NCBI RefSeq assembly: GCF_963676685.1
Contig: NC_092348.1
Span: 7,688,001-7,752,000 of the forward strand
From: Mytilus edulis
Lineage: Eukaryota
Reading direction: 5' to 3'
Length of the DNA stretch: 64,000 nt
Positions 387 through 61,521 of the stretch are shown here, one piece after another (positions within the stretch are counted from its first letter, which is position 1; each line of letters opens with the position of its first letter). The notes beneath the pieces were generated by a model, which ran no database searches, was not told the origin of the DNA, and saw only the letters and a program-made list of their open reading frames with translations. The translations under genes and the position numbers were made by a program.

Positions 387-3300
387 TTGTCACATCTTGC
401 ATGTCCAAGAGTTCATGTAAATGAAGTTATTACAATTCAACCAGGACCATTTGAGATGAATTGTCACAACAGTGTGGAAACAGTTGTCATAACACCTCCA
501 TGTGCCTACACAGGACCAGGCAATATCAAAATGAGACTGTTCTCAAATCATTGGAGAGAAGGACAGGTTAGTATTCACTGTAACAGTATGGAAACATAAC
601 ACCAACATATGCTAACTCAGGGCCAGACAAAAACCCCAACTAGATCCTTCTTAAATCACTGGAGAGCAGGCATGTCAAAATAAATTGTAAAAGTTTGGAA
701 GCATAAAACCAACAATGCAACATATGCCTCCACAGGGCCAAGGAAAATCCAAATGAGACCCTTTTCAAATCATTTGAAAGAATGACATGTCAGGAAACAT
801 AACACCAACATCTGCCACTGTTTCCATTAATTTTATTTAATTTGTTGTTTCTTTTTTATTACATCAATCATCCCAATTTTTTTTTTAACATCCATATTAT
901 GATCTTGAGTTTAAGGGTATAAGATTTTCAGAAAAAAATTAAACATTTATTTTTCATTACAAATTTTATTAATTACCTTCAGTAGTTGTTACTTTATCAT
1001 ATGGTACAAAAATCATTCCAAAAAAATCATTCCGTGTTGGCCCCAGGTGACTTTTAAAATGTAGATATCATTGAAAAAGCTCCAAATTATCTCCCTTTGG
1101 TGCAAAAATGCCATTTTTTGGCATTAAAATTGAAATATCTTTTTTAACTCATCAGTGACCTTTATTTTTATGCCCCACCTACGATAGTAGAGGGGCATTA
1201 TGTTTTCTGGTCTGTGCGTCCGTTCGTCCGTCCGTCCATTCCTTCGTTCGTTCGTCCGTCTGTCCCGCTTCAGGTTAAAGTTTTTGGTCGCGGTAGTTTT
1301 TAATGAAGTTGAAGTCCAATCGACTTCAAACTTGGTACAAATGTTCCCTATGATATGATCTTTCTAATTTTAATGCCAAATTAGAGCTTTTACCCCAATT
1401 TCACGGTCCACTGAACATAGAAAATGATAGTGCGAGTGGGGCATTCGTGTACTGAGGACACATTCTTGTTTACTGTTGTTTTTGAATAAGCTGTACATTA
1501 ACTAAATAACTGTAAAATTTAAGCGATTTCTGTAATTTAGTTCTTTTTTTATTTCGATATTACCGCTATTTCTCCTATTAGTTCAACAGAAAAAAAGGAC
1601 ATTAACAAAAATGTATGCTTTTTTAGAAGGCAGATTGTGAGCGTAAATGAACGGTGACCCCATTTTTTTATTTCATTTTTCAATAAGGTATAAGATAAAG
1701 TTCATTTATAGAAAAATATAGCGAAATCCTATATTAAATAAAAAAAATGATTTAGACCCGCGAGCCCCCTTAAGCAAAATTTAACCGTTGTTGTTGCTTT
1801 ATTTAGCTATAGAGTGTCAATGTTTAAACATACTTTTTTTTAACAGAAAGTTCCACATACAAAGATGAAGAAGAAACCAAACCCCAAATCTTCAGGATTA
1901 GTTCTACATTGTCATGGTGGAGGATTTGTAGCACAGTCTTCAAGGTCACATGAGGTATAGAACTTGGGCAAAATAAAAACATCCTAAATAAGAAATTAAC
2001 CAGTCCAGGATAAATTTTAGCATCTTTGTTTTATGCAGTTTATGAGGCCGTCCTAAGAAAAGTTATCAGTTCATAATAAATTACACCACTTCTTTAATAA
2101 GCATCTCTGTTTTGTGCAGTTTATGATGCAATCATGACCCTGAATAATGCTTGATACTGACCCTGAAGTCAGTCAACAGAAATCTAACAGGATAGTTATT
2201 ACATGTCACTTTAAGTACCCATTACAACTGCTATTGATAACATAAACAGTACCAATTTAATGCAACAGATGAGCAGGTCAACAAATAATGTCTTCAGTGA
2301 TGCTAGAGGCCAAAATATTTAGATATCTAACATCTAATACAAATGTTGAACTGAAGACAGACTAAACAGGCTGGTCTATGGCAGTCTTTTTTAAGAATTC
2401 ATAAATAATAAATCAATTACTGAAACAGTTAAATCATTCACTATTTATATTTTATGTAGGTAAATATGAAGGACTTACAATAACTGTTCTGCAATATGTG
2501 ATTCGTTGATTGTTTTGTAGGTATATTTGAGGCAATGGGCCAAGGATTTGGATGTACCTATATTATCTATTGTTTTGTAGGTATGTTTGAGACAATGGGC
2601 CAAGGATTTGGATGTACCTATATTATCTATTGTTTTGTAGGTATATTTGAGGCAATGGGCCAAGGATTTGGATGTACCTATATTATCTATTGTTTTGTAG
2701 GTATATTTGAGACAATGGGCCAAGGATTTGGATGTACCTATATTATCTATTGTTTTGTAGGTATATTTGAGACAATGGGCCAAGGATTTGGATGTACCTA
2801 TATTATCTATTGTTTTGTAGGTATATTTGAGACAATGGGCCAAGGATTTGGATGTACCTATATTATCTATTGTTTTGTAGGTATATTTGAGACAATGGGC
2901 CAAGGATTTGGATGTACCTATATTATCTATTGTTTTGTAGGTATATTTGAGGCAATGGGCCAAGGATTTGGATGTACCTATATTATCTATTGTTTTGTAG
3001 GTATATTTGAGACAATGGGCCAAGGATTTGGATGTACCTATATTATCTATTGTTTTGTAGGTATATTTGAGGCAATGGGCCAAGGATTTGGATGTACCTA
3101 TATTATCTATTGTGTTGTAGGTATATTTGAGACAATGGGCCAAGGATTTGGATGTACCTATATTATCTATTGTTTTGTAGGTATATTTGAGGCAATGGGC
3201 CAAGGATTTGGATGTACCTATATTATCTATTGTTTTTTAGGTATATTTGAGACAATGGGCCAAGGATTTGGATGTACCTATATTATCTATTGTTTTGTAG

Positions 3301-6300
3301 GTATATTTGAGACAATGGGCCAAAGATTTGGATGTACCTATATTATCTATTGTTTTGTAGGTATATTTGAGGCAATGGGCCAAGGATTTGGATGTACCTA
3401 TATTATCTATTGTTTTGTAGGTATATTTGAGACAATGGGCCAAAGATTTGGATGTACCTATATTATCTATTGTTTTGTAGGTATATTTGAGACAATGGGC
3501 CAAAGATTTGGATGTACCTATATTATCTATTGTTTTGTAGGTATATTTGAGACAATGGGCCAAGGATTTGGATGTACCTATATTATCTATTGACTATTCA
3601 TTGGCTCCTGAGTACCCTTTCCCTAGAGCTTTAGAAGAATGTTTCTATGCATATGCTTGGGCACTGGAGAATTCAGAGCTTCTAGGTACATATATTACAT
3701 TTTCTAATTATATATATATCAGCTTTATTTCAGAACTGACACATAATATTCTAAATATTTCATCTGGAAAAATATCTTTAAAAAAATATTATCTGCCATT
3801 AGAATAAGATTTTTGAATGATATTGAGTTCTCAAGTATTAAACTGCTGACGTCAAGTTTTCAAAAAAAAAGTCTCAGTATTCTTTCATTTATTGGTCAAC
3901 TCCTTCTATTTTTAGTATTATTGATGTTTAATGGTTGGTTACATTTAAAGACGTGATTCATCTTACATGCAAGTACCTTTATAACATTTTAGGCTGGACA
4001 GGTGAGAGGATATGTTTTGCTGGAGATAGTGCTGGTGGTAACCTGATGATGGCCACAGCAATCAGAGCCGCATCCTTCCAGATCAGGGTACCAGATGGAA
4101 TCATGGCAGCTTATACACCATTCATGGTCAGATATACACCTTCACCATCAAGGATGATGGGATTAATGGATCCCTTACTTCCTATGGGGATACTTACTAG
4201 GTGTTTAGCAGGTAAATAATAACACACAGGATGACGAGAATGAAGGTTTACAATGCACTAGCTTCAGACTTATATTTCATTAAACAATTATAAATGTAAG
4301 GTCTTTTATAAGCAATTATATTGAGAATAACACAGCTCTTAATAGACTGTAGAACCATTAATTTTCATGGGGTTAAAGTTTAGTGGTTTTGTCTGTATTT
4401 AAGATTTCATGGGGATTTAATTTTGTAGTTTCCAGTTAATGCAAGTGATATTATATGTAGGTTAAATTTTCCTGGGGTTTTTAATTTCGTCGATATATTC
4501 TTTTCACAAAATAAATGAAATTAAATTCTCAACGAAAATTTCTGCTTTTTACAATATATAGATTTATGACAAGAGTTATGTTTAACAGTCACTGCTAACT
4601 TTCCTGTATAAAGTTAATTAGTTAAATAAAGGCAACAGAAGTATACCCCTGTTCAATAGTCATAACTTGATTAAGTGAATACAAACTAAAACGAGGGAAA
4701 CACATCAACTATAAAAGGAAAACAACAGAACAACAGAAACACTAACAAAAGCCAAAGTACATAGAAACAGACTATTTGATAAAAACAGTAAACAAAGATG
4801 TGAAAAAAAAGATACATGTATAAGACAAGTTTTTCTCAATATTGATATTTGCTACAGTCAAGTAACAGGAGTCAGTTTCACAAAAAAAATTACGACTAAG
4901 ATTGATCGTAAGTATACTGATTTGTTCAAGACTTATGACTTATCTAAGTTGTAAGATTTTTAGTGAAACCTATTCCAGAACAATACTTAAAATAACAACA
5001 GATGAATGGAGAAATGAGTTTGAATTAAAGATGGTGTTTTGTTGTTTGCATGTTGTGGCATATCATTATGTTTTTATGAAAACAAAACAAGCTTTTTCCG
5101 GAAATATTTGAATCTCAATTTAGATGCCTACTTCCTGTTTTCTTACATTTTGAATTATGAGTTGGTGTATGCTTAGCATGGCATCAGTTGCATTTCTTGT
5201 TTTTATTTGAGATATTAAGTCAAAGAACTAAATTCATTAAGCAACCTACATGATTGCAATAGGAGATAAATTGACAAGCCATGGCATGATACTTTTGTTA
5301 CCATTGTAACCTGTGGCAGTAATCTTAAAAAATAATGAATACTTTGTGACTAAATTGTCATTGATTTCATTTGTTTACAGCATATGCTGGGGTGTCCACA
5401 TGTTTTTCACCAAAAGATGACAAATGGGTTATAGTAGAATACAAGAAGAGTGACCACTCGTTTGAAGATTGTGAAAAATCTACAAAGGGGGATAACTCTC
5501 CAACAGATACTTCAGCATCAAGCTCATTACGTAACTCTGCAATGGATACTTTGACATCTAGTTCTGAAATGGAAAGCAACAGTGGAACGGAATCATGTTT
5601 TGAAGAAGTTGAAATTGACAATGGACAGGTACCGATACCTCCAATAAATGACGAAACTACTGAAAAAGAGGATGTAAAAAGTGAAGAAAGTTTTGAAGTT
5701 TTGACTGTTTCAAAAGAAGCTATAGGAACTCCTGATTCAACGGACTCACAGTTTTCAGTAGAAGATTTTGATTCAGAAGGTGCTGATCATAGTACTTCCC
5801 AGAATGTAAATGTCAATGATTCTGAACAAAATGGTGCTGTAATGGAACTGTCAGAACTAAAAATTGGAACGAACTCTGTAGAAAATGGTTCTGTTAATGA
5901 GCTATCACAGGATAATGTTGTAATGAGTCCTATGGAAGATGGTGCTTTTAATGAACAAACTCTCTCAAAGGATATGATTGGTCAGTCAGATAGTGTTTCT
6001 GGTCAGAGTAACAAACATAAAAAGTTAGCTAGAGTCAGCAAAGGGATTTCAAAACAAGCATCTGTTGATTTACCAAAGGAAGTGTGTCAATCTGTTCCTC
6101 CCCGTCAGAGCATGACATCTCGGTCAAAAACATTTGATTGTGGTGTCCAAGGTGATTCAGATTCCAGTTTTGTTACAAATTGTACTGGAACATTGAACTT
6201 TGTGCCCCTGAGAGCTGCCAAACATCACATTCAACATAGTCCTTTGACAGCATTTCGTCATCTACCTATTGTGAAGAATCCATACATGTCTCCATTGTTA

Positions 6301-7013
6301 GCGTCAGAGGAGTTGTTGAAAGATTTGCCTCCTGTTTATCTTGTCGTAAGTTTATTTCATAGTACAAATTTTTGAAACACTATGATGTTTTGCAAGTAGG
6401 ATACATAGGAAATAAAATTAAAGGAGAAGTATTTTCTTTCCATTGACTCACATCCAATGTAAACAGCCTGGTTCAGGAGTAAGCTGCCATCTAATTCACA
6501 AGTTGTGTTCAATGATTGATCAATAAACTAAAAAATCATGTTCACATATGTTTATACAATTATCATGCATGTCATAGACATACACGTGCAACACACTTCT
6601 GATTAATGGCTGAAACATCAAAAATTGAAAATTTGGTTAAATAAAACTTGAAACAGAATTTTGAGACAGATTAACATATTTTACAAATGATGTCCAACTG
6701 TTTCAATTTTTTTTGTATTTTCTTAATCATGTTAATATTGAATTGTGTATTTGAAATTTCCACACTTACTTGTATACCTAATGATGTCATATTATTAATT
6801 GCACTATTATTCTAATTTTAGGCCTGCCATTTGGATCCTCTTTTGGATGATTCTGTTTCATTTGCTAAAAAGCTGAGAGATCTCAATAAGAAAGTTGACC
6901 TTCACCTTATTGATGATTTACCTCATGGATTTCTAAACTTTTCAATGGTCAGTAAGGAGGCCAGATTAGCATCTGATATATGTGTCAGTAAAATAATGAG
7001 TGTTCTTGGATAA
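387..7013 (+). CDS. LIPE: Hormone-sensitive lipase, 3' portion (6 exons; 5' exons lie upstream of the window)
   Basis: Exons 387-566, 1847-1954, 3541-3685, 3993-4211, 5381-6345, 6822-7013 all have AG/GT boundaries and join in frame (1809 nt including stop). Motifs present: [14 protein letters not shown] (oxyanion), [33 protein letters not shown] (catalytic Ser), LDPLLDDS (Asp) and LPHGFLNF (His). All are characteristic of HSL. Confidence 0.96.
575..815 (+). repeat. Degenerate tandem copies of the 3' end of LIPE exon 387-566, inside the following intron
   Basis: Two ~100-110 bp decayed copies plus a fragment. For example, ATGCCTCCACAGGGCCAAGGAAAATCCAAATGAGACCCTTTTCAAATCATTTGAAAGAATGACATGT matches exon GTGCCTACACAGGACCAGGCAATATCAAAATGAGACTGTTCTCAAATCATTGGAGAGAAGGACAGGT. 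Confidence 0.75.
915..1769. mobile_element. Non-autonomous DNA transposon flanked by TTAA (Kolobok/piggyBac-type target site), host of a nested insertion
   Basis: TTAA at 911-914 and 1770-1773. Ends read GGGTATAAGA... and ...GACCCGCGAGCCCCC, an imperfect TIR with the left end apparently partly deleted. No ORF. Confidence 0.5.
1165..1471 (+). mobile_element. HINE/DINE-1-like non-autonomous (Helentron-associated) element
   Basis: Subterminal inverted repeat ATGCCCCAC (1170) / GTGGGGCAT (~1436), a (CCGT/TCGT)n microsatellite at ~1217-1262, and T-rich flanks. This is the architecture of bivalve HINE-type elements. Confidence 0.7.
2509..3592 (+). repeat. 60-bp tandem array made from the LIPE intron acceptor plus first 52 nt of the exon (17 full units plus the functional copy)
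   Basis: Unit GTATATTTGAGRCAATGGGCCAARGATTTGGATGTACCTATATTATCTATTGTTTTGTAG repeats with exact 60-nt period from 2521 to 3540. The copy starting at 3541 continues into ...SIDYSLAPE. Confidence 0.98.
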
Positions 7014-42300: not shown

Positions 42301-44157
42301 CTCATGTTTACTGTCGCCAGCAACAGCAACGGTTAAACCACCGACAACCGCAACGGTTAAACCAACGACAACCGGAACGATTAAACCACTGATAACAGCA
42401 ACGGTTAAACCACTGACAACAGCAACGGTTAAGCCACCGACAACCGCAACGGTTAATCCCATGACAACAGCAACGATTAAACTACTGACAACAGCAACGA
42501 TTAAACCACCTACAACCGCAACGGTTAAACCAACGACAACAGCAACGGTTAAACCACCAACAACAGCAACGATTGAACTAACGACAACCGCAACCAAAAC
42601 GACGACGATGACAAGCGGCACAAAAATGTCTACAACAGCACAAATCTTAATGACAGGAACAACGGATAAACCAACCTTAACGACACAAAAGCCGCAATCA
42701 ACGACTCCACAGCCTAATTCAACGACATCAAATCCCCAACCAACGACTAAACAACCATCGACAGCCCGACCTACACGTAATCTGTTAGAACAAATGTTTT
42801 GTGACAATAAGAATACAATTGTATGTAAATATGATCCAAACAAAGTTTGTGGTACTGATGGCGTTACGTATGATAACAAGTAAGTACCGTTCATGTTGTT
42901 TTATATCATTCTATTGGAAGTTAAATACCTTTCATTGATAGTTAATACGAGAGACACATTTTACTCTTTCACATGGATCAGCAGGAAACATTCTTTTTAA
43001 ATGTCACTCTCGTGTTGAACTATCAAAAATCAATGATTTAAAAGACAACAAATTTAATTTCAACACATGCTTCCGGTTTCGTATTACATCAATTTATTTC
43101 ACTTGACTGGGCGGAGTTTGAATGTTTCGCTCATAATAAACCATTCCATCTATAGATAGGTGTTTTAGGATAAACTCATCAATGAAGTGTCCAGTCATTC
43201 TTTTGCAAATTCCTTTGATGGCACTGATAGGTGATTATAAATCAGTAATAATTATAACAGCAATCATCCTAATCACACACATCTTCAAATAGACTGTCCT
43301 TATGCAAATTAAAACGTAAGCTCCGCCCAAGCAGTTGAAATGACATTAGAAATAGACTGTCAACATAAATTAACCCATCTTGCTTTATTTGTTAGTTTTT
43401 GAATGGCTGTAACGTTATATAAATGCATTAATTATAGTTAATTAAAAATTTGAATACAAAAAGGACAGATAACTCAGTATAACATATTTGATAAATATAT
43501 ATGAGAATGTGACAGAGCAGATTGTTACCCAGGGGAAAAAACATTGTCAACATTGGCTTTGACTCGGTTGGCAATATTTTGTTTGGGTAAAATTTGCTCT
43601 ATCTGTAATTTAGAGAGTATAAGAACTTAAAACGTTTGTAAAAATATAACCATTTTCGTAATAATGAAATGGGAGACATTTAATTATAACTTAATTTGGT
43701 GTATTTACTGTCTTCTGATTGGTTAAAAGTATTACTTTTATTTTCAATGTTGTCAATTGTTATGGCGACACGCCCACTCTGACGTTGTGTATTCATACGT
43801 CATCATGTGTGTATATTGTTAATGTAAATATAAATAATATAAAAAGTTCTTTGAGTTTTATTTTTGATGGAAATTTATTTATAATGAAAGTCAATAATTT
43901 ATTTTGAATTTAATGAACCATAAAATCAATTTTTGACTCTTCACATTTTACATAATCCGCTTGGTGTAAATCTTTCTAGATTCGGTGTAAACAATCTATT
44001 GTTATTTGTGTCTACAGCTAGTAATTCTTAGAAATTATGTTCCAATTACACAATTAATATTACTTTTATATGCTACTTTTTCAGTTGTGAGTTTGCCAAA
44101 GTACAGTGTGATGACATCTACTTGCAAATAAAGAACGCTGGAGATTGCAGTTCATAG
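39352..44157 (+). CDS. Secreted Kazal / Thr-Pro-rich linker / Kazal protein, paralog 1 (290 aa)
   Basis: Exons 39352-39379 (MYKLCIFFC), 40129-40264, 42244-42879, 44085-44157; 873 nt in frame. Two 6-Cys Kazal-type domains (ICDTNGFLYHNFCAFDQAVC; VCGTDGVTYDNNCEFAKVQC...GDC). AATAAA at ~44179. Confidence 0.9.
39756..40046. mobile_element. PIF/Harbinger (Tourist-type) MITE in Kazal gene 1 intron 1
   Basis: TIR GGGAGCTACCATTTGATTTT / AAAATCAATTGGTAGCTCCC, TTA TSD at 39753-39755 and 40047-40049, and internal AAAGGCAGGAY repeats. Confidence 0.88.
42301..42590 (+). repeat. Coding 24-bp repeat (TATVKPxT octapeptide, ~12 copies)
   Basis: ACAGCAACGGTTAAACCACCGACA-type units inside the Kazal gene 1 linker exon. 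Confidence 0.9.
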
Positions 44158-60369: not shown

Positions 60370-61521
60370 AAATCTGTCAGAATCTGTCAGAACTGTTCTA
60401 GGACAGTGTGTAGAACTGTCACCCTGACACCTTTTAGACAGTTCTAACTAGAACAGTTCTTACCTAGAACTGATTTGGTCAGTTCTACCTAGAACTGATT
60501 TGGTCAGTTCTACCTAGAACTGATTTGGTCAGTTCTACCTAGAACTGATCCAGACAGTTCAACCCTAGAACAGTTTAAGATATTTCTACGACTAGAACAG
60601 TTCTACGTTAGAACAGATTTGGTCAGTTCTACGGTAAAATTGATTAGTCAGTTCTATCCATAGAACAGTTTTAAGAACTCTTTGTCTTAAATATAAATAA
60701 GCCAAAAGAATATAATACGTATTAAAAAAAATCATTTAGAACTGTTACAATCCTGACACGTTTGGTCAGTTCTACGGCTAAAACAGTTACAATCCTGACA
60801 CGTTTGGTCAGTTCTACGGCTAGAACAGTTACAATCCTGACACGTTTGGTCAGTTTTGCGACTAGAACAGTTACAATTCTGACACGTTTGGTCAGTTCTA
60901 CGGCTAGAACAGTTACAATCCTGACACGTTTGGTCAGTTCTACGGCTAGAACAGTTACAATCCTGACACGTTTGGTCAGTTCTACGGCTAGAACAGTTAC
61001 AATCCTGACACGTTTGGTCAGTTCTACGGCTAGAACAGTTACAATCCTGACACGTTTGGTCAGTTCTACAGCTAGAACAGTTACAATCCTGACACGTTTG
61101 GTCAGTTCTACGGCTAGAACAGTTACAATCCTGACACGTTTGGTCAGTTCTACGGCTAGAACAGTTACAATCCTGACACGTTTGGTCAGTTCTACGGCTA
61201 GAACAGTTTTAGACAGTTCTGCTGACAGTTCACTACGGTTAGAACTGATTTGGTCAATTCTGCTGACAGTTCTACGACAAGAACTGATTTGGACAGTTCT
61301 ATGTAGAACAGTTTTAGACAGTTCTACCCTAGAATTGATCCTGACAGTTCTACTTATTAATAGAACAGTTATGGGGGTAAAACTGTTCTAGGTAGAACTG
61401 TTCTAGGACAGTTTAAAAGAGTTCTATGACAGTTTATAACAGTTCTATGACAGTTTAAAAGAGTTCTATGACAGTTTATAACAGTTCTATGACATATTAT
61501 TCTGACAGTTCTAATGAGAGG
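60370..61521. repeat. Composite tandem-repeat block built on AGAACWG/CAGTTCT motifs (26-, 42- and 32-bp units)
   Basis: 26-bp ACCTAGAACTGATTTGGTCAGTTCT x3 (~60460-60545). 42-bp TAGAACAGTTACAATCCTGACACGTTTGGTCAGTTCTACGGC x~11 (60737-61208). ~39-bp GACAGTTTAAAAGAGTTCTATGACAGTTTATAACAGTTCTAT-type repeats at 61408-61492. Confidence 0.9.

Follow-up and report, generated by a model that had tools for sequence, protein, structure and literature searches.

A tandem array of 18 AG|GT splice acceptors in the hormone-sensitive lipase gene of Mytilus edulis resembles the 'mirage' minisatellites of amphioxus

In a 64,000-nt window of the Mytilus edulis genome (NCBI RefSeq assembly GCF_963676685.1, NC_092348.1, positions 7,688,001 to 7,752,000 of the forward strand), the gene for hormone-sensitive lipase (HSL, LIPE) contains a tandem array in which the splice acceptor of one of its exons, here called exon C, stands 18 times in a row. 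We consider this array to be probably a 'mirage' minisatellite, i.e. a tandem repeat that took its start from an exon-intron junction, which would lie in the gene as inert extra intron while the last acceptor is used directly. The locus had been singled out in a sequence-only reading of the window as a candidate ratchet for recursive splicing, and we discuss below how far that proposal carries.

Tandem Repeats Finder detected one array at 2509-3592 (coordinates given without a contig are those of the window) with a period of 60 nt, 18.1 copies, 97% matches, no indels and a score of 2084, the strongest among the ~12 tandem arrays in the window. The 60-nt unit consists of bases 1-52 of exon C and the last 8 nt of the intron, and AG|GT is found at 18 of the 18 array junctions. 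Cut at AG|GT, the array yields 17 units upstream of the real exon (2521, 2581 ... 3481; 2521+60k), which all begin with GT and finish with AG, and each of the 17, read in the exon frame, encodes 19 residues and then ends in an in-frame TAG. The usual end of a unit is ...SIVL; unit 12 ends in ...SIVF followed by the stop, and unit 2 carries a Y>C replacement. Copy 18, which starts at 3541, is identical over 52 nt and then continues into ...SIDYSLAPE up to the real donor at 3685/3686. The acceptor at 3540 is the only one that gives lipase: a transcript spliced to this last acceptor would continue ATTGACTATTC, and one spliced to a decoy acceptor would continue ATTGTTTTGTAGGTA. The intron measures 566 nt without the decoys and 1586 nt with the 17 decoys. 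The sequence-only reading had described 18 tandem AG|GT junctions, a 60-nt unit of 52 exon and 8 intron bases and a join at ATTG, and had claimed that only the acceptor at 3540 is productive while the 17 upstream ones are closed by stop codons; direct reading together with Tandem Repeats Finder confirmed the former, and the translations of the units confirmed the latter.

The content of the unit and a pair of ATTG tetranucleotides also bear out the earlier proposal that the array arose by duplication over the 3' splice site with a 4-nt microhomology. One ATTG lies in the intron, 12 nt before the original acceptor, and the other at exon bases 49-52 (Table 1); a 60-bp duplication mediated by microhomology leaves just such a pair, one tetranucleotide at either end. 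We propose that slippage or unequal exchange between the two tetranucleotides would have duplicated 60 bp that hold both the 3' splice site and the start of the exon, and that ordinary minisatellite turnover would then have expanded the duplication to 18 copies. Only five positions of the unit are variable (5, 12, 24, 54 and 57). The variants at positions 5, 54 and 57 are singletons, while G at position 12 recurs in six units and A at position 24 in three, and this sharing of variants among units shows repeated rounds of exchange. Both recurrent variants fall on synonymous third-codon positions in the lipase frame (AGA/AGG, Arg, at position 12; AAG/AAA, Lys, at position 24), and exchange with variant alleles of the real exon might account for them. 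The AG|GT junctions and the in-frame TAG are by-products and not adaptation: the junctions read AG|GT because the conserved valine codon (GTA) that opens exon C was copied with the acceptor, and the stop is in frame because the intron ends in TAG, which is read in a unit of 60 nt, or 20 codons. The 17 upstream copies would then act as extra intron, and the spliceosome would join exon B (1954/1955) straight to the acceptor at 3540, giving normal lipase mRNA. Judging from the analogues described below, this acceptor would be chosen because it alone is followed by a complete 145-nt exon and a real donor, which fits exon definition. We infer both its usage and the lack of a function of the array.

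A three-unit, off-frame open reading frame (ORF) of the array had no match in the protein database, a blank that is not evidence of absence, and the duplication-specific 23-mer junction had 0 matches in a metagenome scan, the scans holding no Mytilus DNA. A further AG|GTAAAT junction, also noted in the sequence-only reading, is present upstream of the array as claimed (Table 1). We considered whether it could be an older, decayed unit; its score of 26, against a mean of 18 and a maximum of 29 for shuffled sequences, does not support this, and we treat it as a chance occurrence.

Arrays with a similar architecture are known from amphioxus, in which tandem repeats in the genes for Adh3, troponin C, globin (BflGb6/BflGb9) and PGBD5 span intron-exon boundaries and duplicate splice sites (PMC3087553, PMC3902484), and in which copy number varies between haplotypes with no aberrant mRNA (PMC3087553; PMC3902484). 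According to a passage in Ebner et al. 2010 (PMC3087553), the name "mirages" was given by Canestro et al. 2002 for the arrays of the Adh3 gene. The amphioxus mirages and the LIPE array are alike in that the unit is the host's own intron-exon boundary, is tens of bp long and includes the splice signals. In the LIPE array, with its 18.1 copies, 8 nt of intron and 52 nt of exon C make up this boundary; the authentic exon is terminal, only copy 18 continuing, with the array in the adjoining intron. BflGb6 has exactly the same form: its unit joins the 3' end of an intron to the 5' part of the exon that follows. The authentic copy of the amphioxus mirages goes into the mRNA, and these repeats have been proposed to be connected with the evolution of introns. 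The two systems differ in that one is in a mollusc and the other in a cephalochordate, in copy number (18 vs 3-6 in the globin genes), in identity, which is higher here (97%), and in that all LIPE junctions read AG|GT and come with an in-frame stop. In addition, the LIPE array is known from its sequence, whereas splicing and polymorphism have been shown for amphioxus. The literature searched yielded no description of mirage-type arrays from molluscs, bivalves included. A second analogue is the 37-bp variable number tandem repeat (VNTR) in intron 7 of human F7, whose first element spans an exon-intron boundary and whose identical pseudo-sites are silent, making it a natural model of splice-site choice (PMC1557585). 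The F7 repeat copies a donor, its authentic site is the first copy, and 5'-to-3' scanning was shown experimentally (PMC1557585), whereas the LIPE array copies an acceptor and its productive site is the last copy.

To place the boundary itself in a wider context, a metagenome scan with exon C gave 80 loci, none of them from Mytilus, and 29 related HSL loci of other animals on metagenome contigs were examined at the boundary. Most of the 29 share the same phase-0 intron position. The junction reads AG|GT (first codon valine) in about half of them and AG|AT (isoleucine) in others, and an array at the exon C boundary was found in 0 of the 29. The intron position is thus old, and the GT start of the exon is an old coding feature.

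The HSL products observed in Mytilus agree with the use of the last acceptor. The HSL models of five Mytilus species all read or align as ...SRSHE| followed by the last-acceptor product, and three Logan entries show the same junction, P0198 (854 aa) and P0206 (864 aa) by alignment and P0207 by direct reading. P0206 represents spliced RNA, because it encodes 864 aa on a 3.5-kb contig. An ORF cut at ...SIVL is expected to be ~375 aa long, and none of the 11 members of the protein cluster has this length; the three protein fragments that we read directly end elsewhere than at ...SIVL. The productive junction is used in mussels, in a comparison that is not tied to the array-bearing allele.

The host gene is the hormone-sensitive lipase of Mytilus. 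Searches with the product of exon C gave matches to the human enzyme (8zvq, E 9e-18) and to Pfam Abhydrolase_3 (E 2e-11), and exon E, identical to the M. edulis protein (Table 1), matches those of M. galloprovincialis and M. trossulus at 315/321 and 294/321 residues, respectively. The gene combines HSL_N with Abhydrolase_3 and carries the HGGG and GDSAG motifs; a near-identical Mytilus cluster representative, P0081, is annotated with PF06350 and PF07859. Exons were searched singly and full-length comparisons were made through database proteins. Residues 1-854 of the 854-aa M. edulis RefSeq protein map in order on nine exons (G000:C5:7682378-7695010), as expected from the earlier statement that the rest of the lipase gene is intact, and a search of the 1.37-Gb assembly gave a single copy of the GDSAG exon. 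The HSL gene is single-copy, with all nine exons present, and is otherwise intact. In an older M. edulis annotation, HSL is given as two models, P0201 / P0067 (CAG2197861.1, CAG2197862.1); the break between them falls inside the GDSAG exon, away from the array, and so is unrelated to it.

Table 1. Features of the HSL gene and of the acceptor array in the window.
Feature	Position	Strand	Details
HSL exon A, residues ~257-316 of the 854-aa Mytilus edulis protein	387..566	+	donor CAG|GTTAGT; translation 60/60 identical to P0204
HSL exon B, 108 nt, phase 0	1847..1954	+	HCHGGGF oxyanion-hole motif; ends ...SRSHE; 36/36 identical to P0204
Native donor of exon B	1954/1955	+	GAG|GTATAG
Original intron	1955..2520	+	566 nt; first acceptor TTGTTTTGTAG at 2520; read directly
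Extra AG|GTAAAT junction	2459..2460	+	61 nt upstream of the first unit; read directly
Intron copy of ATTG	2509..2512	+	exon copy at 3589-3592
17 decoy units, 60 nt each	2521..3540	+	exon bases 1-52 + TTTTGTAG; GT start, AG end, in-frame TAG
Authentic HSL exon C, 145 nt	3541..3685	+	donor TAG|GTACAT; 48/48 identical to P0204
HSL exon D	3993..4211	+	catalytic GDSAG motif
HSL exon E, regulatory module, 321 codons	5381..6345	+	321/321 identical to XP_071176811.1 (Mytilus edulis)
HSL last exon (F)	6822..7013	+	DDLPHGF; stop codon

To compare the splice signals, the strength of each donor was counted on the sequence as the number of matches to CAG|GTAAGT, out of 9. The native donor at 1954/1955 scores 5/9 and is the weakest in the HSL gene, and the donor regenerated when exon B is joined to an array acceptor (GAG|GTATAT), the unit starts (TAG|GTATAT) and the exon C donor (TAG|GTACAT) score 6/9 each. 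The regenerated donor, GTATGT in the case of unit 2, had been described as almost identical to the native GAG|GTATAG, and the sequence bears this out: the two agree from -3 to +5, and the regenerated one is nearer to the consensus at +6. Candidate native branch points (yUnAy consensus) are CTTAC at ~2473-2477, GTGAT at ~2498-2502 and TTGAT at 2506-2510; they all precede the duplicated 8-12 nt or lie at its edge. Within each unit, the best cryptic candidates are AUUAU and UCUAU, 15 nt and 11 nt upstream of the AG, respectively. Pyrimidines occupy 12 of the 16 positions from -5 to -20 in the decoys, vs 11 of 16 for the first acceptor. RNA folding of the window segment 3421-3700 predicted a hairpin over each AG|GU, in which UGUAGGU pairs with ACCUAUA ~15 nt upstream in the unit; folding of the last units with exon C gave no discriminating structure, the decoys being equal to the real acceptor, with a z-score of only -2.1.

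Several of these observations weigh against a mirage whose last acceptor is used directly. The donors at the unit starts are as good as the native one, and poison-exon products are therefore conceivable. Acceptors 2-18 do not have the original branch-point region and would have to rely on a cryptic one in the exon-derived sequence. The first acceptor, which keeps the native branch point, could be favoured under classical branch-point scanning. Finally, the protein models cannot separate direct from stepwise splicing, nor can they tie the junction to this haplotype.

The same features sustain a serious rival, although we consider it unlikely, in which the array makes a hypomorphic or null allele: the decoys would divert much of the splicing, or 60-nt stop units would be included, little lipase would be made, and the array would persist in the heterozygous state, as a polymorphism of variable length in a mussel genome that is highly polymorphic. 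The 17 decoys have pyrimidine tracts as good as that of the first acceptor, each with its in-frame TAG, the native donor is weak, the assembly holds no second HSL copy, and the published mirages are length-polymorphic between haplotypes (PMC3087553). The published mirages, however, still splice to the authentic acceptor, the shared unit variants suggest that the array is not brand new, and the HSL gene is otherwise perfectly conserved.

A second array in the same assembly serves as a control for any role of the AG|GT junctions. We found OXCT1, the gene for succinyl-CoA:3-ketoacid CoA transferase, through Pfam CoA_trans and ran Tandem Repeats Finder on the surrounding 70 kb, which gave an array at G000:C1:22752306-22753641 with a 58-nt unit, 23.1 copies and 95% identity. 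The unit consists of 21 nt of intron and 37 nt from the start of the catalytic SENG exon, with a TTAT-type microhomology, and its period is not a multiple of 3. The SENG exon that follows the array, the only exon covered by this check, reads open. The junction of the array is CACAG|CAAACC; since the exon does not begin with GT, this array cannot regenerate a donor. The OXCT1 array has the same size and age as the LIPE array and sits in a conserved metabolic gene where re-splicing is impossible. Such an array can thus lie in a gene whose flanking exon reads open with no need for AG|GT re-splicing, and the conditions under which the OXCT1 array persists should be enough for the LIPE array too.

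This control bears directly on the ratchet. In that explanation, which we consider quite unlikely, splicing would often land on a decoy and regenerate GAG|GTATAT, and this donor would be reused until the last acceptor is reached; the gene would therefore tolerate the array, and the balance between productive mRNA and mRNA lost by nonsense-mediated decay (NMD) would depend on copy number. The LIPE array does present AG|GT at all 18 junctions, with a regenerated donor that is native-like at -3 to +5 and better at +6; the first acceptor, which retains the native branch-point region, might be the favoured one; and recursive splicing at juxtaposed acceptor and donor sites is an established mechanism (PMC8605326). 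Against these stand, besides the CAG|CA junctions of OXCT1, at which re-splicing is impossible, the reported inhibition by the exon junction complex of 5' recursive sites that are regenerated on segments spliced before (PMC8184009). Moreover, the same regenerated donor followed by the 52 identical bases exists at the authentic junction, where it must stay silent, otherwise exon C would be skipped; exon C is kept in every Mytilus HSL model and assembled transcript. The donors internal to the array are equally strong, and their use would leave stop-bearing units in the mRNA. Amphioxus mirages, not all of which carry AG/GT, duplicate splice sites without aberrant mRNA (PMC3087553, PMC3902484).

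The known ratchet points and recursive-splicing exons (RS-exons) of Drosophila Ubx, kuz and Bx (PMC8605326) resemble the LIPE junctions in the juxtaposed AG|GT and the regenerated 5' splice site, a likeness which in mussels is one of sequence. They are, however, single and conserved, lie in very long introns, have strong GTAAGT-like donors that surpass competing downstream donors and need a downstream cryptic RS-exon (PMC8605326), whereas the LIPE junctions are 18 recent, near-identical copies with a weak GTATAT donor in a 1.6-kb intron. That intron is 1586 nt long, or 566 nt without the array, no array was seen at the exon C boundary in the 29 HSL loci of other animals, and the regenerated donor is not stronger than its downstream competitors, all of which score 6/9. 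The array also resembles intron gain by tandem duplication of an AGGT proto-splice site (Rogers model), for which cases are known in Drosophila (PMC2891723), in that AG|GT lies in the duplicated segment, the units run from GT to AG and are potentially spliceable, and the length gained is divisible by three. Unlike in that model, an existing 3' splice site was duplicated and the old intron was merely lengthened; the intron position is not new and is common to many animal HSL genes. Of the original proposal, the anatomy, the origin and the regeneration of the donor therefore stand, while tolerance through re-splicing and tuning by copy number found no supporting evidence, and the CAG|CA array of OXCT1 and the silent donor at the authentic junction speak against their being needed. 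Re-splicing, though unsupported, could still be a minor contributor.

A more general form of the idea is that AG|GT acceptor arrays are self-correcting: where an exon starts with GT, a mis-splice to a decoy gets another chance because the donor is recreated, so that such arrays would form a tandem proofreading ratchet of zero-length exons in a short intron, could grow larger or persist longer than arrays at other boundaries, and would lose mRNA to NMD according to copy number. We regard this as doubtful. An assembly artefact, in which a true locus of one or a few units was inflated by the assembler, is highly improbable even though one amphioxus mirage was reported to be aberrant in its draft assembly (PMC3087553), since the array is only 1.08 kb long, contains no Ns, shows a structured pattern of variants at five positions rather than identical stutter copies, and has a similar counterpart in the assembly, in OXCT1.

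Minisatellites are dense in both regions, with ~12 arrays in the 64-kb window and ~14 in the 70-kb OXCT1 region. Among those in the window are repeats of 42 nt in 11.2 copies (60737-61208, 96%) and of 24 nt in 11.4 copies (42321-42594). In the OXCT1 region, a 99-nt unit in 1.9 copies (G000:C1:22729193-22729380) overlaps a different OXCT1 exon at its 3' end and includes the donor there (...GGGAG|GTAAGT), a two-copy junction duplication on the donor side. Near a gene for a p85-type PI3K regulatory subunit, on the reverse strand of G000:C1 29895001-29975000 (14153-14598 of the reverse complement), an 82-nt unit in 5.3 copies with 81% identity contains TTTTTTGTCTGACAG|GTGTTT and may be an older, decayed acceptor array. 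No array was found at the four MIF loci that were located, and no 8.7-kb array was found in the 80-kb region of the p85-type PI3K regulatory gene.

In summary, the LIPE array is a further case of a known kind of repeat, the mirage, in a phylum without a report in the literature searched. As a single locus it is ordinary, a junction-derived minisatellite in a repeat-rich genome within an otherwise normal lipase gene. As a natural experiment on splice-site choice, it offers 18 acceptors that share at least 52 nt of identical sequence on either side and are directly joined to a usable donor, with only the last one productive, and the usage of these junctions across copy numbers would bear on how the spliceosome chooses among identical sites and on rescue by re-splicing. 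Mirage-type arrays in Mytilus may deserve a genome-wide study.

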